From Pecten maximus (Eukaryota): a stretch of 64,000 nucleotides of DNA. The position numbers and the translations under genes were made by a program. Every line of letters begins with the position of its first letter. Positions within the stretch are counted from its first letter, which is position 1. The notes beneath the pieces were generated by a model. That model saw only the letters and a program-made list of their open reading frames with translations. It had not been told where the DNA came from and did not search any database. The stretch covers positions 11,284,001-11,348,000 of the forward strand of contig NC_047026.1 in assembly GCF_902652985.1 (NCBI RefSeq), read 5' to 3'. This document shows positions 3,801 to 39,164 of the stretch, in pieces.

Positions 3801-6800
3801 ATCTGGGGAGTAACATACAACATAAACAAGATCTGGGGAGTAACATACAACATAAACAAGATCTGGGGAGTAACATAAAATATAAACAAGATCTGGGTAG
3901 TAACATACAACATAAACAAGATCTGGGGAGTAACATAAAATATAAACAAGATCTGGGTAGTAACATACAACATAAACAAGATCTGGGGAGTAACATACAA
4001 CATAAACAAGATCTGGGGAGTAACATATAACATAAACAAGATCTGGGGAGTAACATACAACATAAACAAGATCTGAGGAGTAACATAAAACATAAACAAG
4101 ATCTGGGGAGTAACATAAAACATAAACAAGATCTGGGTAGTAACATACAACATAAACAAGATCTGGGGAGTAACATAAAACATAAACAAGATCTGGGGAG
4201 TAACATAAACAAGATCTGGGGAGTAACATACAACATAAACAAGATCTGGGGAGTAACATAAAACATAAACAAGATCTGGGGAGTAACAAAAAACATGAAC
4301 AAGATCTGGGGAGTAACATAAAATATAAACATGAAGCTCTATCAAAGATACAAACGACTCGTTCAATGCTGTCTATATATGTTCATAATATATTCATAAT
4401 ATATTTCATAACTAACATTTTTTTTCTACCGGAGGCGTGTATGATGTAAGAAGATAATGCATACATAGCATTGGGTGGGAAACTTTAAAAGATACATAAT
4501 GTTATATTAACTCCAGGAATAAAATATTATACTGTATATGTAAAAAAGCATTCAATATCAGCATCCCAAATCATAGGCTGAAAACTTTGCTACAGTGTGT
4601 AATAACAAATTATCAAAACATTCTAAAATTAGCATATGATATGTACATTCAGTACATATGTTATACGTATATGTAACCCCTACTCACTAACCTCCTATAT
4701 CCGAGATGACAGCACGGCTAACGATGTCATACATGTCCAATGCGATATAAGAAAATTCCTGAAACATTAACAAAATATTGTTTTCGGTATGGTATTATTA
4801 GGATGTGTCAGGAATTTACTCTTTAAAAAGGTCACATTAAGTATTTGTAGAATTGTTTTATTAATTTTTTGAATATGTTTATATATACACAAAAATGCGT
4901 AATTATATGACATTGTAACATAATTCAAAGGGAGAGCATTGCTTCCATTTATGATGATATAATGGCAGATTTGTCATTTGGTTAAATAATAATTAAGTGT
5001 GGTTCAAACAAAATCTTCACATCGAATGGGGGATAACTCCCACTCACGCTGGCCGAGTTGTTGACGTAAGATGATAAATCGTCTAAGTTATCAGCGATGG
5101 TGACATCAGCGTAGTCCAGTGCCTTGGTAAATCGGTCGTTAGTGGAATACACACAAGCTGCAGAAGCCCTGCAAAAGATAATCAAGTTATACAGTACACA
5201 ATTCACTAGGAAACCGTCACAAAATCACCGGGAAAAAACACCGGGAAACAATCACAAAATCACCGGAAAAACACTACAAAAACACCGGGAAGCCGTCTCA
5301 AAATCACCGCCCGGGAAACCGTAAAAAAAGCCACCGGGAAAACCATCACAAAAACACAGGCCAACCATCACAAAATCACCAGCAAGCTGTCAAAAAAAGG
5401 CAATGCAACATTATGTCGTCAACAAGGCATAGTGTCGTTAATAGGATATGAAGCACTCATAAAATGCTACCTCACAAGAAAAAGATTTCCAACCGAACGA
5501 CAGACCTACGTTTGAATACTTACAATAAACAAATCGAGAGAAGAAACAGCGCCTGCGCAAAACCCATTCTCTTACAGCCCTCATTTTCGTCGTAAATCTG
5601 GAATAATTGAGAAACATAAATTGATAGATAGTTTAGACGTTACCTATCAATATGTTTTACTTTTCTGGATTAATATTTTCTCAGTAACCCTCATCATACG
5701 AGGATCTATAAAGAGACTGTGTCCCAATCTTACCATATATCATAAGGTTATAATTCTCATAATAATTATCATAACGTATTCATTTTACCAAAAAATATTG
5801 TCGAGAATGAATGCCGAGTAAGAGTTGCCTATAAGGCATAATGTGTTTAAACTCAGTTTCTACACTTTGTGTATATATTGAATATAGATCAAATGTTATA
5901 TAGATACGAGTTTATACATCTGAAATTTCACAATACCTGTTTCAGATCGCCACCGCAATTACCACAACACCGACAGCAGCAGAAACAGCATCCACAGAGC
6001 GGCATGAAGATAACGTAGAGGAGTCCGAGTACAAAACAGATACCAAACCCCATAGCGTAGTTTACCAGCTGAGGAGAGAGGAAACACGGGTTCTGTCTAT
6101 GATTTGCTTTCTTAATAATTTATAAGAACAGGAATCAAGGGATATACAAATATAGCTAGGAAATAGAGAGGATCGCACAGTGCAAAACATGCAGAACAGC
6201 TACTTTGATCGGTCATGTTCAAACCACGGACACGTCAATCCAAAATTTTGCAGGGGGTTCACATAAGTCGCCTCTTACGCACACGCTGTTGTTACATCAG
6301 GTATATTCCACTGAGTGATTATACACTTCTGATGGATACTTGTTTATTTGGGACCGCAATTTGCTTATACATGTATGTTGTTGTTTTTATTTATTTATTT
6401 TTTGTTTTTGTTTTTGTTTTTTTGTTAATCTAGTTAATTTTAGTTCTTTGTTTTCCTACATAATATACTAACGTTAAGCAAGCTTTACTTCCGGTTTTAA
6501 CAATTTTATCAAAATGGTTTATAATTTGCATTTCATTTTACTCACCTCCATATAGCGTTCTCCAATATCAAAGTTGTTATTTAAAACATCTTTGATCAGA
6601 CCTGCGAAAAATGAAGTTTTGATAGAAATTGTTCCAATAGAATCATTATACCATGCCATCACGCGTACCAAAAATGAAGCAAATGAATCGATATCATGCT
6701 TCGTACTTTTAACCTATTACATTAGATATGATAACATGTAAATATAAGTTGTTTTATTAAAATGTGGACATATATTTTGCTACATCAGAAATAAAATCGC

Positions 6801-12146: not shown

Positions 12147-14881
12147 ATGAACATTTTACGTAAGTATTGCTACTTTTGCTTTTCCTTAAACCGTCTTGTA
12201 CCATTGATCCTTCGTACAAAGATGATCAACTTCCCTGTTCAACCGCTCATAAAAATAATAGTTAATACATCCAGTTTTAATTGTTGTATCAAATCATTGC
12301 ATAATGCATTAAAGGATAACGCAAAAAAAAAAAAAAAAAAAAACATTCGGACATTATTTTGTTTTTATTTTGTTTTTATTTTGTTTTTTTTGTTTTGTTT
12401 CTTGTTTTTCTTCTCTTTTTTTTTTACATTTACCTTTGCAATTCTTCAAAGTTCTTTAATGTTTGGATATTTTATTCATCTATTCATCTATTTCTCGGAT
12501 AACTTGAATTTTAGATCTGTTTACTGCCGTCGCCACCGTAGCTGTTTGTGCGGCATGCACAATACAGACAAATTCAGCACACAACACAAGGACCTACACC
12601 ATCGATACATCCGGGTCCTGTAATGACGAAGATTATAGTTCCCTTCCTATTTGTTCCATCGAAACATTGAATCGGAAAATGAGAGTTGCCCAGCGAGTAA
12701 TGCGACACGCAATCAATGACATTGTAAGTTTCAAAAAGCAATATGTTTCCAAATCAAACTTATAGAGCTTAATGTCTGCTGTTTGATAAACATGAACTAT
12801 CAGGAATATAATCACCTCTTAACATACTTGTATATATTGAGATGTTTATATCTTTTTGTATATATTATATAATGTTATGTTTATTTATGTATATGATTTT
12901 ATGAGGATCACTTGGATAACAATAGTTGTTTGTTTTAGTTTAACGGCCCATCGACGGCTGTGGTAATTTCGGGCCATGGAGATTAATTAACTTTCTTGTC
13001 ATAAACAAATGGGTAACGAAGACAAAATCAGATAGTAAGGTTTATTTTTAAAAGCATTTGTAGTGTATATTTAGATTATATAACGTCAAGGATGGGGGGA
13101 GGGGGTCGACTTGGTTAACAAACTAATGAACAGCGACGAATATTTAGAAAGAAATTGATTCAAAACCTTTGATTTATTAGGTAACAACAATACGCTCCGG
13201 TTCACTTAACTGCCATGACTACCAGAACCTGCCCCTGGTATCCAATACTGGATCTGACATGGTAAGAGCTAATTATTTACAATGCAATGTAACATTATAG
13301 GAATAGCTTATATCCACTGATACCTCTGAAATGTGCACCTCTACATCAGCAATATATCAATGTAATATAAGCTATAGAATACCTACCACAACAACAGATC
13401 TACATAGGAATTGTACTAAAAGACTGTATGGACAAAATAGCACTTATTTATCTATCACTATTATAATTATATATATATATATTATGATATAAATTATATA
13501 TAATCATGTATCAGATATATTTACAATATGACCACTTCTTAACATATTGACTATTGACTTGTCAACATGAAGTCTACAGTACCAATATATCATTGACGTG
13601 TCTACAGTACCAATGTATCATTGACGTGTCTACAGTACCAATACATCACTGACGTGTCTACAGTACCAATATATCACTGACGTGTCTACAGTACCAATAT
13701 ATCATTGACGTGTCTACAGTACCAATATATCATTGACGTGTCTACAGTACCAATATATCATTGACGTGTCTACAGTACCAATGTATCATTGACGTGTCTA
13801 CAGTACCAATATATCATTGACGTGTCTACAGTACCAATATATCATTGACGTGTCTACAGTACCAATGTATCATTGACGTGTCTACAGTACCAATATATCA
13901 CTGACGTGTCTACAGTACCAATGTATCATTGACGTGTCTACAGTACCAATATATCACTGACGTGTCTACAGTACCAATATATCATTGACGTGTCTACAGT
14001 ACCAATATATCATTGACGTGTCTACAGTACCAATGTATCATTGACGTGTCTACAGTACCAATATATCATTGACGTGTCTACATAACGTCTACAGTACCAA
14101 TGTATCGGTGACGTGTCTACATTACGTCTACAATACCAATATATCATTGACATGTCTACATGATATCTACCTGATCGAACTGACAAAACAATGTTATCGT
14201 TATGTGTATAATGAACTTTATACTCCTTTTTATCTTAGAGACATATATATATAAAACATCAATACCGTGTCTATACAAGTTTGTAGTCTATATAAGACAT
14301 AAGGCATTGATCAAAATACGCTGTAACATGTATATGAATGTGAGTATTCCTGATTGGTAAAAACCTGCCCCACAGGTATTGACGAAATCTAGAAGTGATG
14401 TAAAAGTAGAAAAAGGGGGAATCTATCTGATATTTGTGAAACTGCTATGGCACACAATGTGGTATAACTGTTAACCAAACTGTGTCCGTCTGTGTGTTTT
14501 TTGTGTCCCCTTAAGACATAAGATATTATTTTGTAGCCGTTGATTAGAGTTTATTGTTGCCCGTCTCTTCAGGTCTCTACCCTCCAGACAGGGATACAAA
14601 TGATGACACAAGTTGCTTTAAACATTTCGGTCACAAACTGCCACACACGTGGACGATGCTCTCACAATGTCCTTCAGCCGATTATTGATGTTATATGCGA
14701 GATGAAACGCACGCTCATGTACGTCGAGGTTGACCCCAATATTTTCAGTGCGACGATGACTTGTAACACAATGGACAGAACAGAACTCACGGTATTCACG
14801 TGTGCTAGTCTCGGAAATGCTGTCGAAGTTCTTCGTTTCTTGGAAAATGATATCAGCAGAATTTTCAGACATACGTCGTAA
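12147..14881 (+). CDS. Secreted four-helix cytokine-like protein, paralog A (203 aa; LIF/OSM/IL-6-like candidate)
   Basis: Exons 12147-12159, 12515-12723, 13181-13261, 14573-14881 (intron phases 1,0,0; all GT-AG; no internal stops). Protein MNILHLFTAVATVAVCAACTIQTNSAHNTRTYTIDTSGSCNDEDYSSLPICSIETLNRKMRVAQRVMRHAINDIVTTIRSGSLNCHDYQNLPLVSNTGSDMVSTLQTGIQMMTQVALNISVTNCHTRGRCSHNVLQPIIDVICEMKRTLMYVEVDPNIFSATMTCNTMDRTELTVFTCASLGNAVEVLRFLENDISRIFRHTS. Exon-by-exon homology to paralogs B and C supports the gene model; the cytokine identity is inferred. Confidence 0.85.
13572..14160. repeat. 28-bp minisatellite, ~18 copies plus degenerate tail, in intron 3 of paralog A
   Basis: Unit CTACAGTACCAATATATCATTGACGTGT at 28-bp period (13574, 13602 and onward). 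Confidence 0.97.
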
Positions 14882-15789
14882 TTTGGTTTAAGACAGTTTA
14901 ATTGTTAATTTATATAGTATATTTCTGATCAAAATGTGACATTGTAATCTTCAATTGAGATTAAAGTATAAAGAAGTATGATTATTTTTTTGTATTATTA
15001 TGACTCCGTTCAAATACCTTAAAACATAACCTTAATGATACAATGCTTAGAAATGAATTAATTTCTCCGTAACAAACAGTCAGAAAAAACCGGCACGCAG
15101 ACGAAATCTTAATTTCAACCCAAAAACGATAACACGAGCGCAAAGTATGAACAAGCTATATATTTGAATGGATATAGTTGATAGAATAGGGGAGAATAAA
15201 ACCAGTTGCTCCGAAAGTGAAAGCGTCCTGCTGGCTCATACAAATATGGGTGAATCCAGATTAAGCCACATCATCAATATCGTAACCAGTGGGAGACATC
15301 GCAGACACTATTCATGCGAACGATCATCGGACTTCATATCGAACAAAGAGATGAAATATTTCCAAATGCGATCAAATGATTGAATACAAATCTTTCCTGT
15401 GGTTTTTATCAGCCTTTATCTATTGAAACCCTGTGTTGTTCGATTTTAAGTCAGCAGGTTACATTAGTCTAGGTAATAGTGATATAGGGAACACGTCATT
15501 GAGTGTCGAGTCTACTGGAACATTGAAACAGTGTAGTTAGGAGGGGGGGGAGTGTTCAATGGAATATGATACCCTTTTAAAATGATACCCCCTTAAAGTA
15601 AACACGTCATCAATATATCTATAGGTGAAATAGAAAGACTTCGCATGGTCTTTGCTACATGTTATGATAAACATTTCAATATCATTAGCCTCAAAATCAA
15701 GAATCAAGAATCAAGTCAGCCAAGAGCGGGTATTTGTGTATACAAAAGACATGTCTTGGAGTATTAACTGTAAAATGTATGTGTATCGA

Positions 15790-16000
15790 TTTTACATGGA
15801 TTGTACAAACGACATCCTTTTGTGTGGATTGTACAAAAGACAATCTTTGTGTTGATTGTACAAACTTACCATTTTTTGCAGATTCTAGAAAACCGTCCCT
15901 TTGTGTGGATTGTACAAAAATGACCTTGGTATTGTATAAGAAAAAAGCTTTGTTTGTATTGTACAAAAGGCACCCTTTGTGTGGATTGTGCGTACAAGAT
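15790..16000. repeat. Degenerate short tandem repeat (TTTGTGTGGATTGTACAAAA)
   Basis: About 6 imperfect copies between the convergent 3' ends of paralogs A and B. Confidence 0.7.
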
Positions 16001-17147
16001 ATTTACATTTTAGTATTAATTTATTTATGATTAAAACTTATGAAAGTGTTAACAATAACAACAAATAAGTAAGTATTGAACATTAAAAAAAACTTTAATG
16101 CCTTCACTTTACATATGAATAAACATATTTACAGTAAATGACTAAAATCCATAATATCTAATACTTATCAATAAAGTAGATGACAATAAATTAAAAAGAA
16201 ATACAGTGTATAAAGGAAATATTCAGCTCGCATGACTAAATACCGTCATACTTGTAAAATATATGACATTTAAAGGCAAACGTAAATTTTCAATGAAAAA
16301 CTAAACAAAAAAACGATTGCATGGAAAACAGTGATTTGACCACATATTCTGCAATTTACACCCAGCAACACAGCGCCATTTTCAATGGGTTGTTCATCTG
16401 CTTTCAAAAGTGTTTTAAAAACCACAAAACATTCAATAAAAGTACATAAAAATGACGTATTCTTAAGTTGATTCATTACATATATACAGGCGAGCATCAT
16501 TTTGACGAATATATAACATCCTCCCGAATGGCCAATCATCAGCACAACATTCTCTCCTTTAAATATATACGACAACGTGACAACAAATGGTCTATAAATA
16601 CACATAAAGGGTTACTCTATATTTCTTAAATCACAAACTCATGCCAGGCCATGGATTTTTGATTTATACACACCTTCGCTATTTTTTGCTTCATACTGAT
16701 TGCAAAATCATAATCGATTTCTACTTTAAATGATTTCGCTTGTAGATCAATGGCTCGCTCTTCTTTAATATAATATTTTATCAAGTTGTTGTTCACTATC
16801 ACGGCAGTACAAGGATACCCAGAAAGCACAACACGTTTTTTCAGTGATATAGATATAATGATCGTTGGTCTTGACGTTGATAAACCTTGAATCGACGTCC
16901 ACTAACTTTGAAAATATGACGTTGAACCAATGTTAATTTACATTATCTTCATCATCCCACTGTCTTTGTTGAATTTCAGTGTTGAACATAGTTTGCACAT
17001 CGTCGACATTCTATATTAAGCTTACCCATGATAAAACGGTTATTGGTGGCGTGCAAATTGTTCATAAATATAAGTGATGAGTAGGTAAAAGGTTTTTGTT
17101 GATATGACATATTTCTTAAAATTGTACAGTTCAGTTTATGATATCAG

Positions 17148-20100
17148 TTATTGCCGTCTGTGAGAACATGTATCAGTCGTCATGGGCATAGCTAGGTACA
17201 TTCTCACTGTCAAAGTTAAGGGCGGATTTGAAGTTGTGGATAAGGATGTTAGCTTTCGGAGATTTCGGCATGTAAACACCGTCAGGTCAGTCCTATCCAT
17301 AGTATCCATATCCAGTTGAACTTGAACTTCAGACTGTACAAGATCACTGCAAAGTCTTTTCATTTCGCAAATAATTGCCCGCATTGCTGGGAACAAGTTT
17401 GTGTTTAAGTTACTGTGTTGGTGGCAACTTGATATCGTGAGTTTTAATGCTATGTCTAACAACAGAGGCATACCATGCCGGAGGGTACTAGCCTGTGTGT
17501 AAACAAAGAAAAGAAAATTATTTAATGTTACTTTAATAACAAAAAAAAGTGGGATATGTTGGTTTAAGTAATGAGGCATAAAGATATAGCTAACCTTAAA
17601 CCCCAGTGTTGTTGACTTAATGCGTTCAGCATAATGGAAAATGCGAAAGTATTTTTGAAACTCAAGGAAATTCTCATATTTTAACTTACTCAGGTAATGA
17701 GTTTGTTTTTTATTGTAAGTGGTTTAAAAAAGAACTATGATAATTATCGATGTGTTACAAAACTATACAGATTGTTCTTTCTTGTTAAGCAACATTATTA
17801 TCTACATACAAAATAACTATCTAGAGTTTCAAGGTTGGATAAAACGTGTAAAGAATTATCAAAACCATCAAAACCAATTGAATTTGCAAAATAGTTTGGT
17901 AAACCCAATTATACCTTTACATTTTGAAATAATTTTTAAGAAGAAAAAATAATCACAAGCTACCTATATTATCCTTATAAGTATCAGTGCATCAAGATCT
18001 CCACAAACAAAATGGTGACTACAATTGATTACAACCAGGGAACTTATGCTATTCTTTCTATGGTAACGAGAAATACAAAATCGCAATTGTTGCAATTTAG
18101 AATTAATCAATTATATTTTAACAACTTATTCCTATTGATATGAAATTAGACTTGTAAATAACACATATCTTTGTATCAAAGAAAGGGAGATAACTACTCA
18201 CATTTTACGGGAATTTAAGGAATAACAGAACTAAACAATTCTGAAAACCTGCTAGATGATCTCACTACAGATTTCTCAGTACGTAAAGATGCAATGACCT
18301 TTGAGTTTTTTTTTCAACCAAACTTTGTACATTAAACAGTATATTACAAAGCCATGTGTTTACATATGTTACTTAATATGATGGTATTTAGTTAATTCCA
18401 TTCAAGATTTCCAGAGAAATTTATACCCTTATTAACATAAAACTTACTTTGTACGCCGCAATCGACCCTGGTTTTTTTTTAGGTTTTTTGCAAAGTGTTC
18501 TTAAAATATTATTTATTCATACGATTTCTTCGATTCCTTCAGTTAAGCCATACGTACTATTCTAAAATTCTAAAACGAAGACGTTTTTGCTGTACTTACC
18601 ATACTATGTCCACTAGATACAGTAATGTCCATTGGGTGTACATTGCAAAGACTTCTCCTCATCATCACCGTGCTGTCCTGAAAATAAATATTTATTTAAC
18701 AGTTCAAGTAAATACATAGAGAAGTCACCTGTCTAATCAATATATGTTATAATTTAAAATAACCCATACAGAATTTCTTAACCTTTTATTCACCAACTTG
18801 ACAATTTAAGAAAAAAAAAGATTTCCCATGTGGTCTATCCATATTTCGTAATTTTGTTAGAATGTGGAACTCTGAAAAAACTTGATGCATTTTATATCTA
18901 CACATGTCAACGCCCATATTTCTAAGTTTTCCTTTTGGTCAGATGGACCAAATCTTAATTAACTGTACTTACTTGTTCGTCGATCGCCTCTCTAATATGA
19001 TACCTGGCTAAGTCCAAAAGTTCTTTCAGATGGTCTAAATCACAAATACTAATTTCCTCGTGTGTGTTGTATAACCCATCGTTCTCACACAAACCCATTG
19101 TGGTTAAGTTAAATGTTTGGCGATCATTTCCCGTCCTTTGGAGGTATACTGGTGCAGAGGGACAATGTGCTCCAGACATTGTAATACACAGGACAAATAC
19201 TATCAAGCCTGCAATGATATCAACCAAAAAATAAAACATTAAATAATCTATCGATTAGATAAAACATTTATGTTTTTATATCAGTTTTTACTAATATTTG
19301 AAATCAGTAGGCTGACAACTTAGGAGATATAATAGATGGAATGAAGTGAAGAGCAATATCATCAAGCACTGCTAAAGCATATGTTCAACATGATACTGGT
19401 GAAATTATTGGAGTGGTTTAACGACCTCTGTAACATTGAATAAGAGTTAGGGCATTGCAGTTTGCAAAAGTGTTCTGACGTTATGCTGCCGTTAAGGCAA
19501 AGAAAACAACTACAAAAGCTACAATGAGTTTACAATGATATATCTCGACATTTGGTAAAAAAGCTGTTGTGTTCTCAACAAACACTGGCGGTCAAACAGT
19601 AGATATGATTAATTGTAAAATAGTTTAATTGTATTTACAGACCTTGGTTCACAAGTGAGTTGGAGTTTCCGATAGTCAGCTTTAAAACCCCTCACTGTTT
19701 TCGTTATATATAAATTATGACAATTTATTACAAAAATATGTTGAATAATAGAATATTTTTGCTAATGATTAAATAACTCTCTAATGCCGTGCTCAACTCT
19801 TTATATGTAAATGAGCCGCGGAATATATATCATACACGCATTCCCCAACTGGTTAAAACAGCCCAAAGTCGATCAGACGTACTGGTTGCTGTCACAAGGG
19901 TAAAGAAAAGGAGTGTTAGGCAAAATTACGACATCGTCTTTGACTTGAAGAGTCAACTAAATTTTGTTTGATAACAATAAAAAAAAAACAGAGAGGCGTT
20001 AATCCTACAGAAACTATGAGTAATTCTAAAGACATGAATGAAAAGGACCAAAATCTAGACGGGGAGGGATTTTAAGGGTAATTATCAGTTATGACTATGT

Positions 20101-21889
20101 AAGATATCAGTGTTTTATGCAAGAATGGATGTTTATACATATTACACTATCAGTTTTGCTCAAACTAGTGGTTAAAATGCCAATTTTGGACTGTTTGGCC
20201 AACATATCTCCATAACTAGATTATTCATGGATAAACCAAGTATGTCAAGACCTTGTTTATGTGAAGTTTTAAAGGTGTAGAATTTTTAGGCATAATTCCG
20301 TTACGGGCAACGATAACAGAGTTATCGCCCCTACACTTCCTTCCATATTATTCATAATGTTCTGGCATAAAAATAGTCTTTTTAGATATCTGTTCAGGGT
20401 AAACATACCAATAAATAGAAGTCCTTTACTATGAATATACACAACAAAGTACAACTTATAATTACATGTATACGAAGTTGACGCAATAACAAAAATATCA
20501 AGATATGAATAATAGTTATCCATGTTTATATTTCTCAAGCGTCACATTTAGGTTATCTTTCGTCCTTACTTTCGTGCCTATTTGATTTTGAGTCTGATCG
20601 GGAAAACAAAATGGCCTACAGACAGGGATCTTGAATTTTGATAAGTGAAATTTGTTAATACTATTTCGTGAAAAGTACCATAAGGATATTTTTTAAATTG
20701 TCCATGCGTATGTTTTCCTTTGTCCCTAAATCAGTTATGAGTCTGATGAAAACGAAATGGCAGTCGTGTTTGATTTTGACAGTTGAAATTTGTTATTGAT
20801 ATATTTCAGGAAGATCTTAGATCTTGCTCGTCCTTCATATGCAGGTTTTCCCTTATCAAATGATTAAGAGGAAGAGGGGAAAGAAGGGGAAAATAGAGAA
20901 AATAAGATAAGTTTTTCATAGGACCGATAAAGATCGACTAGTGGGTGCTGGAATATCTTGTATTAAAAACCAGATTGAAGCCTGTTTCATACACTGGAAA
21001 TCAGGAAATACCAATCCTGAATATCTTGTTTTGGTTTTACCATTCTACAATAAAAAGGTGACGCATTTATCCTTGTATCGATCCCAGTCGAGGAGTATAA
21101 TCATTTAAACTTATAGTTAGTTTTAGCGTTTTTAAAGATTACAATTAGCTTCATGTTTATTAATGTTAACAAATATACTTGTCAATCATGTCAAAATAAC
21201 AGAACATAGCATACAATCAAACAATGAATCAGTCAATTATCAAAAATCAAATAAATATGGTTTCAATTGTATTGTAAATAAGGTAGTTATGCTTTGGAAT
21301 TCAGTATCAATAAACAGACGATGATAATTGAATCTGATTTACCGCTTAAACTTAACCAATACTTTCTAAACGGTATATCAAAATCTATACTAGAAGCATA
21401 TATCTTTATATCAACAATTACCAGTGATAATAGAAATACGACTTTACTTAAGTTAAGGAGGATATAAAGTTGACAAGACTCTAAGTAACTGGTGTTCACG
21501 AAAAAACAAAAGAATGACATTAAAGAGACAAACTTACACAATAGTTTCGGGGTCACTGAATTCAGAACCTCTAACATCGAGCTATATATTATTTCCTTAT
21601 TATATATATAGGCTGTACACTATTTAATATAATATACTCAATGGTATCACAATTACGCTAGTATTTTTTTACAGAAAATATTCTATGGTTTTAACTTATC
21701 CTCTTTGATAAGGTATGGTTTTTTTTTTAATTAAGTGACAGTTGTTAATGACATCAATATACCGTGTACATCCTAATCAATATGTATATCAGTATAAAAA
21801 TAACAAAACATTCATGAACACTTACTCGTTAAAAACTTAAAACAACTTGTTTGCCTTTTCGCTAACGATTGAGTCACCATCATTTTCAT
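17148..21889 (-). CDS. Secreted four-helix cytokine-like protein, paralog B (240 aa as assembled; 232 aa if a 1-bp frameshift at 17254-17256 is corrected)
   Basis: Exons 21889-21826, 19208-18973, 18677-18600, 17492-17148 (phases 1,0,0). Protein MKMMVTQSLAKRQTSCFKFLTSLIVFVLCITMSGAHCPSAPVYLQRTGNDRQTFNLTTMGLCENDGLYNTHEEISICDLDHLKELLDLARYHIREAIDEQDSTVMMRRSLCNVHPMDITVSSGHSMASTLRHGMPLLLDIALKLTISSCHQHSNLNTNLFPAMRAIICEMKRLCSDLVQSEVQVQLDMDTMDRTDLTVFTCRNLRK...; shares ICEMK and MDRT..TVFTC with A and C. Exon 1 is the least certain part. Confidence 0.8.
17700..18300 (+). mobile_element. Decayed L1/Tx1-type LINE 3' ORF2 fragment (zf-RVT region) in intron 3 of paralog B
   Basis: Broken translation WFKK...IDVLQN...NNYLEFQGWIKRVKNY and TRNTKSQLLQFRINQ..ILTT..YEIRLVNNTYLCIKEREITTHILREF resembles the Tx1 C-terminal KL..FQ.KI.HRIL.TN..L.KI......C..C....ET..H.FW.C pattern (family pattern recalled). 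Confidence 0.6.
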
Positions 21890-24800
21890 TATCACAGTAA
21901 CAGATCTTGTCCCCGTGTACTTCTAACTGTGACGTGTTTCAATCCAGGCAGATATAAGTTGATGTAACTTGTTTCGCAATTATTGTAAAATGAATAAGAA
22001 TTCCAATTCCAGCCATATTTATAGGAAATATAACCCGTGATTTTAAGTGTAAATTAACCTTAGTTTCCCGGATATCCTAGGTAGTTCAGAAATCCCTAAA
22101 AGTCATTGGTCATTTAGCTGGCAAAAAATACATGACGTAAATCATAATCTGACATATTTGAAATTATCAGAATCGACCGTTATGGTTCAGTTGACAACAC
22201 GTGGAAGAATTACAATAATAATTTCCGGTTATGCGCAAATTAAGCATTTTGTTATGGTAAACCCCGATACTCACATGTGCATATACATATTCACAACTAC
22301 AATAACATTTCTTGTTCCTGGAATTGATGTGATGCGCTCCAGTCTTACCACAATGCAATGCGATCGCAAAAAGTATTAAAGCAAGGTTTATCAGCATATA
22401 AAATTAATTCACAATTGAATCACTTATATTAGTATTAATATTTATCGGATGACTTTTCACCTTAAATTTAATAGTTTATGATACTAATAGAGAAGAAAGT
22501 TAGCATATTAGTGAATTGATATATCTATATGTTAATTGGTCTATATATAGGTAACATATATTTTCTGAGATTCACAATGGTAAAATCGTTACATCATTGT
22601 TGTTACGGAAAAACAAACCCATTTATGTTTCCTTAATGTTTCAGTGACGTGTTCTTCCCGTAGATACACGTGTAATCCTCCAAGATATTAGTAAACATAT
22701 GAATGCCTTATCTTATGATCATACGTGTTCCGTTTGGTTCCTTCTTGTTCCGCTAAACGGAAACAGAATTTTTCTTGAATTTGTTAATATATTCCTTCCT
22801 ATCAGGAAAACTGGCCTTACAATCAGTCTCCTCTTTCTCTTGACATTCCTATTGTTTATTTGTCCTACAGTATTCGTTGTCGTCAGCACATTTAAAAAAG
22901 AACGATGATGGTCGGACATAAACAGACTAATGGCACTTTGAGCGATCTACTACCTTAAAGGGTTTTGGACACATAGGGTATTTTTCCATTTTCTGTTAGC
23001 CTGACCCCATAAATGTTGGCTGACACAGGTTTTACCTCGCCTTACAAAGCTGTTTATCTATTTTAGGCCAGTAGGGGGATATTGCTGATGGCTGAAAAAT
23101 TTTAATGAGCTAGGTGGTCACGTGGTCCGACGCGTCATCTGGTTCACCTCACCAGCATCACTAGGCTAGAATCTGCCTTGTTATATGCATTTATAGAGGG
23201 AAACTTCAAAGAGCCCCATATTATTTTGTAAACATTGAAAGCAATGACAGTGAATGTCCTGATTTTATAATCTTACATGTTTAGATATTCTTTCCACACC
23301 TCATGTCTGTAATTGTATAATCAAAATAGTAGACAAGCGAACAATATCATAACCTTGGTAATTAACTAATATCACATCTTTTTTTTTATTTCTTTTTTAT
23401 TTTAAAAACTCAAACAATGGCATATACACTATAGGTCTACTCAGAGATATAAATATCACATATGTGATATATACATCTCTTGTCTACTATACAGTGAGGT
23501 GACAAAATGATATCACTGCAGTCTTTTTACGGTGATTAATTTTCCTAGCCTTGTTAACCATTTTATTTTTTGGCATAATTTGATAAGATTTTGTACACTT
23601 TTAAGAACATGTTTTACTCTTTCCTGACGTAATATTAACATAAAAATATCCATTTCTTAATGTTGCAAGATAAAGATTTGATAAAAATGCAGTAGTTTGA
23701 AATACAGTTGTCTCATCCTGATGCAATTTAATTAGATATTACGTAATCACAGAACTGATTTTTTTTTTATCTGAGACGATACATGGGTTTTTTGTACATT
23801 GAACTTTGAGGATTTCCTTTGTATATATTAAATCAAGAATTTTTAAATATTGGTTGGAATTAAAGCGTCCAGATATTTTTTTACTCAAATCATGTTATGA
23901 TGAAATGTTGGAAACTAAAGATACTCGGATTCTTTATTTAAATCAGTAACTTTGAACTGTCAGTCTTGGGTAAATGTTTGAAGAAATCAGTTACTGTTCT
24001 AATCAATTTTACAGTAATGTATTCAAACAACGTCCTTTTTTGACAATTTCCTTAAAGAATGTTTTATGAAGGTTATGAAGGAAATGTATTTGATGTGGTG
24101 AAAATGTTACGCAGACATTCGTATTGATTTGACTAAAACAGATCATTTTAAATACTATAGTATGTTTAAACGTTTTCAGTTACTCAAAGCAGAAAAGATA
24201 AAAGAACTTAACGATTTAGGAAAATATTTATCACTAGCAAATAAAAGATTTTAATTAGAATATATTCACTTTTAATGATTATTTTTCTGTTTCCCTGTAA
24301 CAAATCTGACAAATTAGCTTATTGAATTAAAAATCATGTAAGAGTGGATGCCTTTGTCCATTAATGTTATATAATATTTTATCCAATAAGTTGTAAAACT
24401 TATGGAATAAAGTTGAATTTAATACAGTTGTTTAATGAATAACGGCATCATCACTGGAGTACATGTAACCAATTCACTGTTGTAACCCAATATATTAATG
24501 TAAAGTATTCCCACATCACAAAACCTTTGGTAGATAGTGTGTAAATAGTGATTTTAACGTTAGTTGACCGACCTCGTTATCAGAATGAAATTTTGCATAT
24601 AGGTCAGTTGTCCAGATGGGCCCATGCTGTGCCCTGTATCTCAGCGTGTATATACAAAACCCCAGGAGTGCGAGGGTAAATTGACTGGCTTTTCAGAAAA
24701 CCAACCTATAGACAACTTTAACCTTTTTGTGTCTAAAACCCTTTAAAGCTGTTTTGCATTATCCCACATTTATATGAAGAGTGACTGTCGGGTTTATAAT

Positions 24801-26405
24801 GAGGCAATACATTGATGTTTTTTTCGTTAAACGTCTCCGTCGAGATTTAGTTAACCATGAAGGCATATTTTTTATATCCTTGCTGTATCGACTGACTCTC
24901 ACAGCTGAACAATCACATTCATGAAGGCATTGAATTGTGATTGCATTTATGGTAGTATTAACTTAATTGTATGCAGGTTTATTCCATGTATTGCTTAAGC
25001 GTAATTCGAAAGTAGAATCAATCAGAATTGTGAAGGTAATGAGTGTTCTATTAATCAAATAGACGTAAGTGAATAGTAATATTTATGTATTTCATTAATG
25101 AGCATTATAGATAATTTCTATATGCATTGTTTGAAGCGAATAAAAAGACAAATGGTGATTACATCTGTTAGTTTAATGATAACACTCAAAACAATACTTC
25201 TAAAAATAGCACACGTAACATAACTACGAAAAACAAACATAGAACGTAGATGAATATATAATATCTCATTTATTACAAAATAATACACATATGAACATTT
25301 TAACATTTTATGAAAACTTATGATTCTAATTATATTTTGAAACAACTGTAAAATAAATGATACAATGTAAAGTTTCACGTTAATTAAGGACGAACATAAC
25401 GACGAATAAAAACCCGTATTATAAATAGACAACAATAACAAACACTGGCTTACATCTGTACACGTATATTGAATCATTAAATGCCAAAGAAATTCTAAAC
25501 ACAAAAACAATCATCACATACAAGAATTAAAAAGAACGCTAATGAACAGAATGAATAGGTACTTGTGAAAGCTGAAACCATCTAAGGAATGAAGGGAAAA
25601 CAATTGACACAAAATAAATCTTTGATTACTATCAGTATTATATCGAATCTGGTGATCTACATCACCAAGTGTTTTGTGTGAAGTCAAATCAGTTGTTTTG
25701 AATCCAGAAGGTACAAGTCTGCTGAAAATGTTTCTTTATAAATAATACTTTAAAATGTAAAACAAGAAAATATCTAAAATATCTTTTTATATTAACAAAC
25801 TATTCTGACAAAGAGGCCATTCACACGATCCCACTAAACCAGCCATATATACACACAATATGATGTTGATACTGTTACATACTCGTCTGTAGCAATATAT
25901 GTTTATTTCATAAACACTGCCATCAAAAAGACCTGTAAAACAGCCACACAATATATCGTTTTCATCGCTTCAGTGAACCTCAATCGCTTAAGCGATAACA
26001 GTAGGTAGGTGCTTTGTTATAAATGTCTGTTTGAAGTTCATGAGATGTCTTATTGTTTCCTAAACAAGAACAATATTTGATGAACAATGTTGTATTGTAT
26101 GAAAAGGTATCCATTTATAAAAATGTGCAGATTCTACTTAAATCTAGGATGTTCTTTCTGTAAAATAATACAACCAATGTCAAACTAGGTTAGGACTTAT
26201 ATTCCCATACAGTTAATTCAATATGAATTACATGAAGATGTGGGTCATCTCCGACGTACTGAAAAAGACCGATCAACGAAGGTTTAAATAATGCACCTCC
26301 TTAACTTGAACGTGTTTATTATATATACAGATGCGGAGTGATCAATACCCTGCTTTCAAGAGTGTTCTATAATAATAGACGTGCGGCTATGTTCAGTTTG
26401 AAAAA

Positions 26406-29400
26406 CTAGCCTTCAAAGTTTTCGAAATCCGTAACAATGTCATGTTTAAGATGATTTATTGCAGAAATTGCTCTCCTTAGATTTCGACAGGTGAACAGAA
26501 TGGTGTCTGATCTGTCCATCTCCTCCAAGGAAATGCTGGCTCGGAACTTGCTAGGCTCAATCGGTCTGGCAAATCGCATCAGTTTTTTCATCTCACATAT
26601 GACAGCACGTATTGGCTGGTGGACGTTGAACTGCGTCTCCCCTGAGAATATAGTGTGGCGACGGTGACAATTTATGATGGTCATGTTCAATGCTACCTCG
26701 GACATCAGTTCAATTCCGTTAATAAGTGTGTCCGTCTGTAACAAAAATACATAATATTAACTTCAAGAATATAAGATATATATAGACTATATTATATTAT
26801 AAACAAGCATGCTGGGTATTGCGATAGTAATATATGTCCCCTACCGGCCCCGCTAAAAAAGTAACAGTGACATTGGCCTTGATCCAAAAGTCCTGAAACT
26901 TGATCTGTATCTACTCGTACTGAATTTACATACCGGGTTTCACCAACATATCTTGAAGCATGGCTGAGAAGAGTGCAGAAAACTGAGTGGACGGACTGAC
27001 AGACAGACAGACGAAGAGGAAACCTATAGTCCCCGCGGTTTCACCGGTAGGGGACTGATAAAGATCCTTTAAGACCATTTCCTTTTGTGCACTATTAATC
27101 TATTAAGATGAAAGGCTTTTCTATTTTTTAACTCGGATTAATTAACTAAATCAAAATTATACCGACATAATGACCAAGCCATAATTCAAACTCAAAAAAT
27201 ATTAAACGAGTGCAAAATATAAACAAAGATATAGATTTGCATGAAGACACCTGAAAATGAACAAAGGAAATAAGACCAGGGGATCCGGGAGAGTGAGCGT
27301 CTTCTCATTCAAGGCTTCACTAACACATATCTAGGTTAAATGGGTTAGGTAATATCGATTTGTAATGATTTTGTTTTTATTCCAGATAGTTTCATTTAAA
27401 TAAGATTATTCAACTGTTCAAATATTAACATATTAAACTAGCGTGATAGCTTGGTGACCCTATAGCATATTAATACACCAAACATTTAAAATAATGTAGT
27501 AGCAAACAAAAAATATCGGCAATTAGCGCCATGAAACTTACCATGCTAGTTCCACTTTGGAAGTCTGTATGATCGTAAGGTCTTCTTTCACAAAGCTCTC
27601 CTTGGTACGATGTTACGCTATCCTAAAAAGGTTAATGATTTACATTAAGATTCGGTTCCCTCTCATTAATCGTAAATAGTACGACTGTCCTGCTCACAAA
27701 ACTATTTACCTATTGTTCAATATCACAACCATCGCTGATCAAATACTGCGAACGAAGGCAGAATACTAAGAATAAATGCAGTGTAGCGAAATAATTTACT
27801 TTCAAAGAAGATAATGAGTGTATCTATCAATGGTTGGATTATCTACAGCGAAAGAAAATGGCTAGATTATCGTTCTACTAAATGACAAGTTAAAAATTGC
27901 TCAAGTACTTCACAGGGTGGTTCGTGGTTGCTGTTTATTTTGTTGCTTCAAAAGATTTGACTTTTTTTTCGTGTAAAACATCAAATATGAACTCACCAGT
28001 TCACTTGCTGTTGCACGGAGGACATTCTCGGCTTCAGACATCAATTCGTTAATGGACTCGACATAACACACGGGTACTGAGGATATCCCGGGAGATTGGG
28101 AACACGACAGTGACGTGTCGGCGGTGAACACGTCAAACCCCTGCTGGTGTAGGTGTTGATGGGTAAATTCAAGTCCGTGGGGACAACTGCAGGTCACTAT
28201 TCCAATCGAAAGCACGAGTAGGATTGAAACTACTGTGGTGTTAACTGGAAAAAAAAAGTACAGGTTCAGGAAAAACCCAAAGCATCTGATTTGGGAGAGC
28301 CGACCAAGTGTCTAATACATCGAAATTAAAAAGGTAAAAGCAATCTTCATGATAATCTATATATTCTATAAAATGTTTATAATGATAATTTGATAAGTTC
28401 TGCTTCTCACGCAATATACATGTTTATACATCTCAATAAATTAAGAGTTGATATCTATAAAAAAGTGGTTATAATAGTATTTGCTGGATTTGTTCTTGAG
28501 TTTCTTTGATCCTATTGGGTGATCTATAGGAACTTTAAATTTACAGTAATGCAAAGGTGTTTACCATTTATCTCTAGACGGAGGGTTGGAATATGATAGA
28601 GGACAGATACATGACCTAGAATTTGTCTAGTAGAAATAACGTTTTGATAAAAAAATCAGATTTCAAAACTGAACATAAAAAGCAATCGAATATGTTTTTG
28701 AAGGAGACGTATATCCGTCTTATTGTGATATAAAAACGAGGATCGCTTGAAGATACTAGAATGAAGGTTTACCAAACCAGCAATGATGTGAATGTATTTC
28801 TCTGTTTCTCGGTACTGATAGCTATATATATCTCAATATGAAAAACCCTAACGCTCTTCTGCGGAAATAGTCATCGAGAAGTTGTACGAAGCTTAATCAA
28901 CTTAACTTACTTACCTTAACAGACTTTGCTAACGTTTCAAACTAAATCTTCAGTTCTACCTGATGGTTTTTATTTCTAAGACATCTAAGCCTTCGTTTAG
29001 TCTCGATAATAAAATATTTTGTTGGTTCTGTTTGTAAATTGATTTCCTATTGAGCTATGGAGGTATCATTTACCCTAAGCAAGATTTTTCGGAGCCTTAT
29101 TTCTAATATAATTTTCAAATCATATAGTTACTTTAGTGCAATTTCAAGCCAAAATTGCTTTTTATGACACCTGGACACTATCATCGCTATTTTTTTTTAA
29201 TCTAATGTAATTTCTATCCCATTTTTGTTTGTTTCTTTTTAGGATTGGTTAAAGGTAACCATGCTTTTAAACACTAAAACCTGATTTGGCATGGTACTCC
29301 GTGTGTCACCAACAATACAATTGAGCAGTTCAGCGTGAAAAGAAACAATGGCATTGAAATAGATATAAAATACTTTATCAACAATAGCTTTAGATATACA

Positions 29401-29741
29401 ATAGAACCCTATGCTCTTAAGTGCATATAGACAATGTTTACAATGGTAATACGTATTTCCTTTACAAAATATGTATAAAGGAAAGGATTTATGTAATAAT
29501 GAATTTATGTCTAAAATAATTATTGCGTCAAAATACATATATGTATTATGGAATATAACAGGCCTATTGTTATTTAGTCAACAAACTGAACTAATTAATC
29601 ATAACATTAATATTGATATACTAGAAATTAATGTTCAGTGTGCTTTCTCATTCACAATCTATAATAAGTCCAAATATGATTTTGAAATCAGTATGCATTT
29701 CTGCTAACTTTTTTTCTACCTTACTTACAATTTAGCGCCAT
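26406..29741 (-). CDS. Secreted four-helix cytokine-like protein, paralog C (223 aa; LIF/OSM/IL-6-like candidate)
   Basis: Exons 29741-29729, 28244-27997, 27622-27542, 26735-26406 (phases 1,0,0; exon 1 is 13 bp and exon 3 is 81 bp, as in paralog A). Protein MALNFNTTVVSILLVLSIGIVTCSCPHGLEFTHQHLHQQGFDVFTADTSLSCSQSPGISSVPVCYVESINELMSEAENVLRATASELDSVTSYQGELCERRPYDHTDFQSGTSMTDTLINGIELMSEVALNMTIINCHRRHTIFSGETQFNVHQPIRAVICEMKKLMRFARPIEPSKFRASISLEEMDRSDTILFTCRNLRRAISAINHLKHDIVTDFENFEG. Confidence 0.85.
26801..27062 (-). mobile_element. Short pearl/HINE-type (non-autonomous Helentron-like) element in intron 3 of paralog C
   Basis: Subterminal inverted repeat GTCCCCTACCGG / CCGGTAGGGGAC, a GACA/GACG microsatellite, a terminal hairpin and an AAACAAG end. 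Confidence 0.7.
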
Positions 29742-32800: not shown

Positions 32801-33814
32801 CTGGTTATTTCTACTACAAATAGTACAAACGACATCAGTAATTGAATGTAAATTAATACTATTTTAGCACAAAGGGAATGGAGCAACAGGCGAAGCCTAA
32901 ACTAGACCTCCCCGTCTCTAGAATATTAAAAATGATTAATAAAACTGAGCTTTATGATTTTGGTCTTTAGGATCAACATGATTCTAATTTTCAAACTAGA
33001 GGGAGAAAATTAAGTATTGAAATTTAGCAGAACAATTCTTAACAAAATACGTAAGGTCCTGTCTATACCAACCCTCTCTTAATACTATAGTTCAATATAT
33101 ATCCAAAGCAGTCTTAAAGAACAATAAGAACGAGTCTGTTAAGTGCATGCTTTATTGAAAAAAACTCAACATACGAAAATGTTTTAGTTAATCCTAATAA
33201 GCAAAATGTTGAAATAATAAAGTGTACCTGAGAAAATAAAATGTGATGGTGTATTATGGCATCAATACATTAATCAAGACAAAAAATAACACCAGAGAAG
33301 GAAAACAACAAATTTTCTCTAGAAAAAATTATTGAACGGAGATATCGTACATCAAAGAAAAAATATTTTTTTGGTGGCGGTATGATATGAAGGTAACAAA
33401 TCCCTGCTTTGTCCATGCAACGATGTAGAGGATTCAATAAATGTATTCTACACAGCGCAACATATATCTAATACGTTTTATAATGTAAAAATAAAACGAT
33501 TTGAACACTCCATAACAAAAATGTTCAAATGGGACAATAAAAATATGGAGACGACGACATTGAGTATTTATCATTTCAATTAACAATTAAAATGAACATA
33601 CATTCAGTAATACTTCATCTTTTACACGTCCACATTGTGTAGGAAATACAAAGAAAGAGAGGTAAAGATTATGATAACTTATCACACATAACTATGACAA
33701 AAATATTGATTTTGTTCTGTCAGAAAGAGGAAACGAGGTCCCCTCATTTAAAATTCATTGGAGACTCCTACTTAAAAAAGGGCAAAAAGAGCATGGGACT
33801 AATAATTCCATGAA

Positions 33815-36800
33815 ATGTTAACTTACATAATGTATCTAAGACAGACCCCAGATTATCTCCTATACGAGGTAATGTTAACATACCTAAGACGTACCCCAGA
33901 TTATCTCCTATACGAGGTAATGTTAACATACCTAGGACATACCCCAGATTATCTCCTATACGAGGTAATGTAAGACAGACCCCAGATTATCTCCTATACG
34001 AGGTAATGTTAACATACCTAAGACGTACCCCAGATTATCTCCTATACAAGGTAATGTTAACATACCTAAGACAGACCCCAGATTACCTCCTATACGAGGT
34101 AATGTTAACACACCTAAGACAGACCCCAGATTATCTCCTATACGAGGTAATGTTAACATACCTAAGACGGACCCAGATTATCTCCTATACGAGGTAATGT
34201 TAACATACCTAAGACGTACCCCAGATTATCTCCTATACGAGGTAATGTTAACATACCTAGGACAGACCTCAGATTATCTCCTATACGAGATAATGTTAAC
34301 ATACCCAAGACGTACCCCAGATTATCTCCTATACAAGGTAATGTTAACATACCTAAGACAGACCCCAGATTATCTCCTATACAAGGTAATGTTAACATAC
34401 CTAAGACAGACCCCAGGTTATCTCCTATACAAGGTAATGTTAACATACCTAAGACAGACCCCAGATTATCTCCTATACAAGGTAATGGTAACATACCTAA
34501 GACAGACCCCAGATTATCTCCTATACGAGGTAATGTTAACATACCTAAGACGTACCCCAGATTATCTCCTATACAAGGTAATGTTAACATACCTAAGACG
34601 TACCCCAGATTATCTCCTATACGAGGTAATGTTAACATACATAAGACGTACCTAAGATTATCTCCTATACAAAGTAATCTTAACATATCTAAGACAGACC
34701 CCAGATTATCTCCTATACGAGGTAATGTTAACATACCTAAGACAGACCCCAGATTATCTCCTATACAAGGTAATGTTAACATACTTAAGACAGACCCAGA
34801 TTATCTCCTATACGAGGTAATGTTAACATACCTAAGACAGACCCAGATTATCTCCTATACGAGGTAATGTTAACATACCTAAGACAGACCCAGATTATCT
34901 CCTATACGAGGTAATGTTAACATACCTAAGAAGGACCCAGATTATCTCCTATACGAGGTAATGTTAACATACCTAAGAAGGACCCAGATTATCTCCTATA
35001 CGAGGTAATGTTAACATACCTAAGACGTACCCCAGATTATCTCCTATACGAGGTAATGTTAACATACATAAGACGTACCTCAGATTATCTCCTATACAAA
35101 GTAATGTTAACATACCTAAGACGTACCCCAGATTATCTCCTATACGAGGTAATGTTAACATACCTAAGACAGACCCAGATTATCTCCTATACGAGGTAAT
35201 GTTAACATACCTAAGACAGACCACAGATTATCTCCTATACGAGGTAATGTTAACATACCTAAGACGTACCCCAGATTATCTCCTATACAAGGTAATGTTA
35301 ACATACCTAAGACAGACCACAGATTATCTCCTATACAAAGTAATGTTAACATACCTAAGACGTACCCCAGATTATCTCCTATACGAGGTAATGTTAACAT
35401 ACCGAAGACAGACCCCAGATTATCTCCTATACGAGGTAATGTTAACATACCTAAGACGTACCCCAGATTATCTCCTATACGAGGTAATGTTAACATACCT
35501 AAGACAGACCACAGATTATCTCCTATACGAGGTAATGTTAACATACCTAAGACAGACCCCAGATTATCTCCTATACGAGGTAATGTTAACATACCTAAGA
35601 CGTACCCCAGATTATCTCCTATACAAGGTAATGTTAACATACCTAGGACAGACCCCAGATTATCTCCTATACGAGGTAATGTTAACATACCTAAGACAGA
35701 CCACAGATTATCTCCTATACGAGGTAATGTTAACATACCTAAGACGTACCCCAGATTATCTCCTATACGAGGTAATGTTAACATACCTAAGACGTACCCC
35801 AGATTATCTCCTATACGAGGTAATGTTAACATACCTAAGACGTACCCCAGATTATCTCCTATACAAGGTAATGTTAACATACCTAGGACAGACCCCAGAT
35901 TATCTCCTATACAAGGTAATGTTAACATACCTAAGATAGACCCCAGATTATCTCCTATACAAGGTAATGTTAACATACCGAAGACAGACCACAGATTATC
36001 TCCTATACGAGGTAATGTTAACATACCTAGGACAGACCCCAGATTATCTCCTATACAAGGTAATGTTAACATACCTAAGACAGACCCCAGGTTATCTCCT
36101 ATACGAGGTAATGTTAACATACCTAGGACAGACCACAGATTATCTCCTATACGAGGTAATGTTAACATACCTAAGACAGACCACAGATTATCTCCTATAC
36201 GAGGTAATGTTAACATACCTAAGACAGACCCCAGATTATCTCCTATACGAGGTAATGTTAACATACCTAAGACAGACCCAGATTATCTCCTATACGAGGT
36301 AATGTTAACATACCTAAGACGTACCCCAGATTATCTCCTATACGAGGTAATGTTAACATACCTAAGACAGACCCCAGGTTATCTCCTATACAAGGTAATG
36401 TTAACATACCTAGGACAGACCCCAGATTATCTCCTATACGAGGTAATGTTAACATACCTAAGACAGACCCCAGATTATCTCCTATACAAGGTAATGTTAA
36501 CATACCTAAGACAGACCCCAGATTATCTCCTATACGAGGTAATGTTAACATACCTAAGACAGACCCCAGATTATCTCCTATACAAGGTAATGTTAACATA
36601 CCTAAGACGGACCCCAGATTATTTCCTATACGAGGTAATGTTAACATACCTAAGACAGACCACAGATTATCTCCTATACAAGGTAATGTTAACATACCTA
36701 AGACAGACCCCAGATTATCTCCTATACGAGGTAATGTTAACATACCTAAGACGTACCCCACATTATCTCCTATACAAGGTAATGTTAACATACCTAAGAC

Positions 36801-38243: not shown

Positions 38244-39164
38244 ATAAGTTAATACATTACTTACATACTTGCGTTGTGGCTTTTGTTATGTACTGAAGAC
38301 AAATCTTGACTTGATAATGGATACAGTACTATTCTATATACTTTGAATTAGTCACCTCAAAAAAATCTTCATACTGATTTTCTGTTAAAATTTCAAAGAC
38401 AAAGTCTGTGTTCGTGTCCCTTTCTGTGGTAATGCGGACTCTGTGCCATAAAGTGACAGAGTATCTATTAATTGACCTAAAGTAGACATATTTTTTATTC
38501 TTAATTGAGGCAGTAAACGTTCTAATCTGTACTATAATTCTTACAAACATCAGTAAGATGAATCCCAGTTTTGACAGAAGAACAAATTCCATTTTCTTTT
38601 ACTTTGGTCTAAAGATGATTTCTCGTTCCTCTGCTTTCACTGTGGCCTGTGTAAACTACTCTTACTAGTGACATTCCCATCAAGAAATTTTAAATTGCAT
38701 TTTTACCAAATTTTACTTAATTTCTTTGTATGTACCGAGATGAAACCTGTCAATAACCTCATTTGAGTGAATCATGAGGTATGTTCCATTGACAAGACTT
38801 TACTATATAACTCAAGGGAGATAATCATGAAGCTATCAGATAGCTAACATCAAGGTTCAGGTGCAGAGTCACACAAATAATGCATTAGAATAAAAAATAA
38901 ATTAGAACATTGAAAAAAAAAAGGAAAAAAAAAAAAAGAAAGTCACACAATAAAGATAGCAGTAAAATTGGTTTACATATAAATTATGACTAGATTTACC
39001 TAAAAGTGATTATGTAATTAATCTCACTAACATAAGTAAAAGTAATAATTCACCGAACAGAACTGCATCAATAACATAACATGTAAACTAAAACATACTG
39101 AGTATTTTACTGTCATTGGTCTATGTCCTGATAAATAGTATCTGAGTCCTATCCACAGCCTTCG

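Follow-up and report, generated by a model that had tools for sequence, protein, structure and literature searches.

A tandem cluster of predicted secreted proteins in the scallop Pecten maximus with likeness to long-chain helical cytokines of the gp130/IL-6 class

Introduction

The cytokines of the gp130/IL-6 family are the closest described counterparts of the proteins considered here, and several of their members, namely LIF, OSM and CT-1, bind the Ig domain of LIFR through a site III motif, FXXK, situated at the N-terminus of helix D (PMC9601804). In molluscs, an IL6R/gp130-like receptor, JAK and STAT are present, but a survey of 2026 reports no known IL-6-like ligand and suggests that the module may use other ligands (PMC13203501). 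In oysters, CgIFNLP has been presented as an 'IFN-like protein' (IFN, interferon), with a structure likened to that of class II helical cytokines, and a receptor as well as activation of JAK/STAT-related genes have been reported for it (PMC9756803, PMC8218723); this is the sole claim of a bivalve helical cytokine that we found in the literature. The present study concerns a stretch of 64,000 nucleotides of the genome of the king scallop, Pecten maximus (contig NC_047026.1, positions 11,284,001 to 11,348,000), hereafter the window, and three genes within it, A, B and C. A sequence-only reading of the window had proposed that these genes encode long-chain four-helix cytokines and had held that molluscs have no established helical ligand. 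The latter statement is too broad, given the published work on CgIFNLP (PMC9756803, PMC8218723), and is borne out for IL-6-like ligands by the survey (PMC13203501).

We propose that A, B and C are clustered in tandem and belong to a family, restricted to bivalves, of proteins of about 200 residues, predicted to be secreted, with a long-chain class-I cytokine fold closest to that of the gp130/IL-6 group and a putative capacity to activate JAK/STAT, a reading towards which the modelling leads us to lean on balance.

Results

The fold was predicted with AlphaFold2 on two database orthologs, not on the joined proteins of the window, each with a 21-row family alignment. These were P0027 (Ylistrum, C-type; 78% identity to the last exon of gene C) and P0004 (Argopecten, A-type; 64% identity to the last exon of gene A), and for each of them all five models had a predicted local distance difference test score (pLDDT) of at least 74. 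The model of P0027 (pLDDT 79.7; predicted template modelling score, pTM, 0.75) contains four helices, A (residues 68-94), B (118-143), C (156-170) and D (192-224), together with an N-terminal hairpin (strands 35-40 and 45-51) and a strand in the CD loop (182-188), and that of P0004 (pLDDT 81.3, pTM 0.74) has the same layout. In both models the helices measure 15-33 residues and are joined by an AB loop of 23-24, a BC loop of 8-12 and a CD loop of 21-22 residues. The predicted structures are those of an up-up-down-down four-helix bundle with long AB and CD and short BC connections, and their helices are the four that the sequence-only reading had delineated. That reading had also named AlphaFold and Foldseek as a check, which came out in its favour for the two orthologs, with a four-helix bundle, long-short-long loops and cytokines as the top matches. 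Against the PDB, nearly all top rows of Foldseek were growth hormone (GH), placental lactogen, IL-6, CNTF, prolactin, LIF, G-CSF and IL-27, with a probability of up to 1.00 and a target-normalised template modelling (TM) score of up to 0.69.

The structural likeness was assessed by exhaustive alignment over 48,161 chains with VIA-align. The best matches of the C-type model were IL-11 (Z 15.1; root-mean-square deviation, rmsd, 3.0 Å; 154/165 residues aligned) and CNTF (Z 14.6; 2.5 Å; 141/150 aligned), followed by OSM (Z 14.1), CLCF1 (14.0), LIF (13.8), IL-6 (13.5), placental lactogen (12.6), IL-27p28 (12.3), viral IL-6 (11.9) and GH (11.6). The best non-cytokine was a ZIP transporter at Z 10.2, and Dps/ferritin bundles did not exceed 7.6. 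For the A-type model, ranks 1-19 were all helical cytokines (IL-11 at Z 15.6, OSM 14.1, IL-6 13.9, CNTF 13.8, CLCF1 13.8 and LIF 12.3), and the best other protein had a Z of 8.8. Over both models, sequential alignments to IL-11, CNTF, OSM, CLCF1, LIF and IL-6 gave Z values of 12.3-15.6 with an rmsd of 2.5-3.8 Å over 134-160 residues. On the strength of these models, the family very probably has the long-chain cytokine fold.

The features of the ESM Atlas, a second kind of evidence, point in the same direction. The nearest named clusters of P0027 are IL6, Hormone_1, LIF_OSM, IL12, CNTF, GCSF and IL11, and the oyster protein P0007, which has only ~21% identity to P0027, falls among most of the same cytokine families (scores 0.89-0.94, with 188-216 of 256 features in common for the two proteins). 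The top or near-top match is a mostly molluscan cluster of 114 members, 11% of which have a Pfam IL6 hit; it may be the family's own cluster.

A helical-cytokine fold could also serve another receptor class or role, and the proteins might be interferon-like antiviral factors acting via a class-II-type receptor, or endocrine factors akin to GH, prolactin or leptin. Fish and mouse interferons reach Z 8.9-11.3, placental lactogen and GH 10.5-12.6 and leptin 9.6-10.0, Hormone_1 clusters stand high in the ESM Atlas feature search, and, for oysters, a receptor and JAK/STAT read-outs have been reported as parts of an IFN-like system (PMC8218723, PMC9756803). Nevertheless, in both models the cytokines of the gp130 family score 2-5 Z units higher than interferons and hormones and align at a lower rmsd with more complete coverage, and CgIFNLP seems to be a different, smaller protein (~15 kDa) whose quantitative PCR primers are unmatched at the Crassostrea locus of the family. 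We therefore regard an interferon-like or endocrine role as improbable.

Conservation in the family is highest at the motif F/Y-T-C-x, within the opening two to three turns of helix D. F/Y-T-C is nearly invariant and the aromatic residue is invariant. Position +3 is R or K in 11/19 sequences; the A-type has A there, while Q is found in the oysters and in one Argopecten protein. The resemblance of this motif to the FXXK of the LIFR binders, a group made up of LIF, OSM, CNTF, CT-1 and CLCF1, is suggestive, the match being only partial. Helix B, for its part, bears a conserved N-x-T/S.

The paralogy of the three genes, which the sequence-only reading had asserted, is far beyond chance in comparisons of both exon 2 (A-C, E = 6e-9; A-B, 1e-4; B-C, 2e-4) and the last exon (A-C, E = 3e-25; B-C, 2e-17; A-B, 1.6e-15). 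Searches were made exon by exon. A profile of the last exon, run against the whole genome of 918 Mb, found exactly three loci at E <= 0.01, namely A, B and C, and with HMMER against 1.84 billion representative proteins it gave 14 matches at E <= 0.001. The named relatives come from Mizuhopecten yessoensis, Argopecten irradians, Ylistrum balloti and Pecten maximus among the scallops, and from Saccostrea echinata, S. cucullata, Crassostrea angulata and Mytilus galloprovincialis. The database labels of all of these read 'uncharacterized' or 'hypothetical', and the remaining matches are unnamed assembly proteins. A word-indexed protein search with P0004 returned the query itself only. At the sequence level, the family thus appears confined, so far, to scallops, oysters and mussels.

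Every genome looked at, namely both scallop genomes and one oyster genome, has tandem copies. In Argopecten, the C-type and B-type genes form a tandem whose order and orientation match those in Pecten, and Crassostrea angulata has two tandem paralogs (L012 9899-11030 and 17022-18589). The annotated C. angulata protein P0013 (177 residues) is N-terminally truncated, since the part corresponding to the signal peptide aligns upstream of its annotated start. In the RefSeq protein P0015 of Mizuhopecten yessoensis, the residue before helix A is R (VPVRY), a position at which Cys (VPVCY) is found in P0001 and the other full-length sequences of the alignment; this is either an allele or a sequence error.

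The family was also compared with CgIFNLP by size and by the published primers, and identity with it was rejected. CgIFNLP is of ~15 kDa, and the forward primer used for its RNA interference, after the T7 tail, starts with ATG and would read M-E-R-K-K-D-K, unlike the N-terminus of any family member. For its quantitative PCR primers, a 21-kb locus with two family members (one locus, of C. angulata and not C. gigas) holds no site within 3 mismatches. CgIFNLP appears, from these observations, to be a gene distinct from the scallop family.

Divergence between Pecten and Argopecten amounts to 0.15-0.23 for nonsynonymous sites (dN), with saturation at synonymous sites (dS above 1), so that dN/dS is rough; these values are consistent with purifying selection on the family between the two genera. 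Transcription is documented for the Argopecten irradians B-type gene, for which a 958-base Logan RNA-assembly contig (SRR18313975) carries the whole open reading frame of 215 residues. Aligned to the genome (L010 9975-10990 / L009 140-200), this contig falls into four blocks with GT/AG bounds and introns placed as in Pecten. Intron 1 is in phase 1 and splits the start codon as A|TG: exon 1 ends in ...CCAAAA|gtaagt and exon 2 starts with TGAATGCC, the ATG being assembled only by splicing.

The genes of the window were read from open frames and splice sites (Table 1). All exon boundaries of A, B and C are canonical (AG/GT), the intron phases 1-0-0 are common to the genes, and the first coding exon of A and of C comprises 13 coding bases only. 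The seven peptides and motifs quoted in the sequence-only reading are all present at the positions and on the strands it had given, and its model of three four-exon genes stands for A and C; for B, the first exon (21889) is unproven and the frame is shifted within helix D. As read from the sequence, the N-termini of A and C are hydrophobic, the ortholog models have an N-terminal helix, and the N-terminus of gene C resembles the N-termini of Mizuhopecten P0015 and Ylistrum P0027. The description of the three genes as unannotated proved wrong for gene C, which is annotated as LOC117338761. The corresponding protein, P0028 (NCBI 'uncharacterized protein LOC117338761 [Pecten maximus]', 151 residues), has exon 2-3-4 joins identical to those of gene C. 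The model begins at an internal Met, with its initial residues corresponding to the end of exon 2, and is devoid of the predicted signal peptide and of the N-terminal third. No A or B protein of P. maximus surfaced in the protein searches, which were not exhaustive.

Table 1. Exons of genes A, B and C in the window. The first coding exons of A and C and the signal peptides are predicted from the sequence.
Feature	Position	Strand	Content
Gene A, coding exon 1	12147-12159	+	ATG + 10 bases (M-N-I-L + first base of next codon); donor GTAAGT, phase 1
Gene A, exon 2	12515-12723	+	Remainder of signal peptide, Cys-containing N-terminal segment, helix A
Gene A, exon 3	13181-13261	+	27 residues, AB loop containing a single Cys; homologous with the third exons of B and C
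Gene A, exon 4	14573-14881	+	Helices B, C, D and stop codon; 64% identity to Argopecten A-type P0004
Gene B, exon 2	19239-18973	-	Signal peptide region and helix A; start at acceptor 19208 (phase 1) or in-frame ATG 19239
Gene B, exon 3	18677-18600	-	26 residues, AB loop
Gene B, exon 4	17492-17148	-	Helices B, C and start of D; frame change at 17259-17248
Gene C, coding exon 1	29741-29729	-	ATG + 10 bases (M-A-L-N + one base); donor GTAAGT, phase 1
Gene C, exon 2	28244-27997	-	Signal peptide, N-terminal strand region, helix A
Gene C, exon 3	27622-27542	-	27 residues, AB loop; 100% identity to P0028 residues 16-42
Gene C, exon 4	26735-26406	-	Helices B, C, D and stop codon; 100% identity to P0028 residues 43-151

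Gene B differs from the other two at both ends. The first exon proposed for it (21889) is possible, with 64 bases and a phase-1 donor, although its start is charged and un-signal-like; the in-frame ATG at 19239 would give the gene a better putative signal peptide. Towards the 3' end, the frame departs from that of its relatives after ...FTCRNLRK, through a one-base shift within helix D (17259-17248, - strand). The continuation in another frame, ANILIHNFKSALNFDSENVP..., scores 72 against the Argopecten ortholog, compared with 19 in the nominal frame; this ortholog-matching frame resumes directly past the shift and ends at the stop at 17175-17173. Gene B is either a very young pseudogene or affected by a one-base assembly error. 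It could be argued that the cluster is partly decaying and, with B a pseudogene, not fully functional in Pecten maximus, as the shift takes away most of helix D. However, before the shift gene B is as constrained as C (dN 0.23, dS saturated), an assembly error would account for the ortholog-matching frame picking up immediately after the shift, A, C and the orthologs are all intact, with transcription seen in the orthologs; a decaying cluster is, in our estimation, highly improbable.

Repeats were noted in two introns and elsewhere in the window. Intron 3 of gene A holds a minisatellite (13551-14160) of ~28-base units, in which about twenty overlapping open frames encode near-identical peptides at a 28-base offset. 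Within intron 3 of gene C, the segment 26782-27372 is a high-copy repeat: in three runs its contigs reach depths in the hundreds, have numerous loose ends and match at 90-95% identity, which points to a dispersed element rather than a part of the gene. Elsewhere in the window, long satellite arrays are open in several frames on both strands (1917-4382, 33814-38244 and 62413-63123).

Discussion

The cytokine reading must be weighed against the view that A, B and C encode lineage-specific secreted helical proteins with a non-cytokine role, be it reproductive or pheromonal, carrier, antimicrobial or in a matrix, in which case the likeness to cytokines would be convergent or an artefact of prediction from few sequences. 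A number of observations weigh against our proposal, and several of them favour this other view. Pfam yielded nothing relevant even at E <= 10, for six proteins and then for all 21 members of the alignment, and a family profile run against the sequences of the PDB found no cytokine and nothing credible; none of the cytokine families (Pfam IL6, LIF_OSM, CNTF, IL11, GCSF, Hormone_1) is linked to these proteins by sequence, and the family is restricted to bivalves. The fold was predicted from a shallow alignment of 21 rows, and the extra N-terminal strand or hairpin that pairs with the CD-loop strand in the models is atypical of the IL-6 family. The E-values of Foldseek are weak (0.07-1), VIA-align itself cautions that helical models typically reach a best Z of ~14 by arrangement alone, and the low-confidence ESM Atlas model of P0027 (pLDDT 0.57) has no cytokine match, its best TM being 0.37-0.42. 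At the basic position of an FXXK-like motif, the A-type has A and the oysters have Q.

The search for a receptor adds to these points, none having been linked to the family. The PF06328 profile found nothing in the scallop genome, PF09067 gave one sub-threshold match only, and PF09240 (Pfam IL6Ra-bind) gave a single exon-sized match on another chromosome (G000:C4:11990387-11990557, - strand; 29.2 bits, above the cut-off, with two internal stops). The DNA flanking this match contains repeats and esterase-like exons, and no receptor exons were recognised in the flanks inspected. Transcript evidence in P. maximus is likewise thin. Run contigs were compared with gene C only, not with B, and those of the species (two runs with the same species label, at low depth) lie only on exon 4, exon 2 and the 3' flank. 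One of 151 bases covers 26411-26561 of exon 4 with no mismatches, and another (28106-28244), on exon 2, ends exactly at the acceptor 28244. The introns of gene C have no contigs apart from the high-copy repeat, and the RNA status of the runs is a guess; the splicing of exon 1 is not proven by these contigs.

Against a non-cytokine role, both models and two kinds of method, independent of each other, single out long-chain cytokines rather than bundles in general; the Z of Dps/ferritin and of designed bundles is only ~6-7.6. Moreover, the long-short-long loops force the unusual up-up-down-down connectivity, and the alignments run to nearly the full length of the target chains (141-160 residues). 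The weight of the VIA-align result, its own caveat notwithstanding, derives from the fact that one cytokine family alone tops both lists, from the near full-length coverage and from the gap to generic bundles. A non-cytokine role consequently appears unlikely to us, while retaining more than a marginal place among the readings.

We return to the proposal that the family acts as cytokines of the gp130/IL-6 kind. The part that concerns the receptor and JAK/STAT is based on the predicted fold, taken together with the presence in molluscs of an IL6R/gp130-like receptor, JAK and STAT with no known ligand (PMC13203501). Once the signal peptide is removed, a disulfide-stabilised bundle would be secreted. 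It would then bind a gp130/Domeless-type class-I receptor and bridge its cytokine-binding modules, with contacts that may involve the helix faces A/D and A/C together with the start of helix D, and this bridging of the receptor would lead to the activation of JAK and STAT. Judging from the modelled fold, signalling through a class-I receptor is the somewhat favoured possibility. It can be hypothesised, tentatively and with slightly less than even confidence, that the family represents the first lophotrochozoan helical cytokines of the IL-6/LIF type and the missing ligands of the mollusc IL6R/gp130/Domeless-like receptor. No prior description of the family was found in a search of the literature on its LOC identifiers and on invertebrate four-helix cytokines.

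If this proposal were true, long-chain helical cytokines and their receptors would already have been paired in the bilaterian ancestor, and such ligands should be findable by structure in other phyla. It would bear on the origin of helical cytokines and provide research on farmed bivalves with candidate genes for immunity, hematopoiesis and wound repair. The family itself is a small and expressible set of candidates, present in scallops, oysters and mussels and conserved under constraint, which makes the question of the mollusc ligand testable at the bench.

Two known systems invite comparison at the level of the whole cluster. The Unpaired proteins of Drosophila (Upd1-3) are likewise secreted proteins of an invertebrate, presumed to be helical, encoded by a small cluster of paralogs and acting through a gp130-like receptor, Domeless (PMC7378365, PMC13203501). 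They differ in being larger, and the PDB match lists contain no Upd structure. The gp130/IL-6 family provides the best structural matches. Like its members, the scallop proteins have ~180-200 residues and are predicted to be secreted and to form an up-up-down-down bundle of four helices, in which the BC loop is short and the AB and CD loops are long; their genes are clustered in tandem, and a conserved aromatic residue is found at the start of helix D, where the LIFR binders have FXXK (PMC9601804). In contrast to the gp130/IL-6 family, the scallop family has been found in bivalves only, shares no detectable sequence or profile similarity with it and has a different Cys pattern, the C-type precursor having seven Cys, one of them near the predicted signal-peptide cleavage site; its models also carry the extra N-terminal strand or strands that pair with a strand of the CD loop. 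In vertebrates, the intron phases are 1-0-0-0 in IL-6 and G-CSF and 1-0 in LIF, and the gene structure in the scallop resembles these in having a tiny first coding exon, a first intron in phase 1 and later introns in phase 0.

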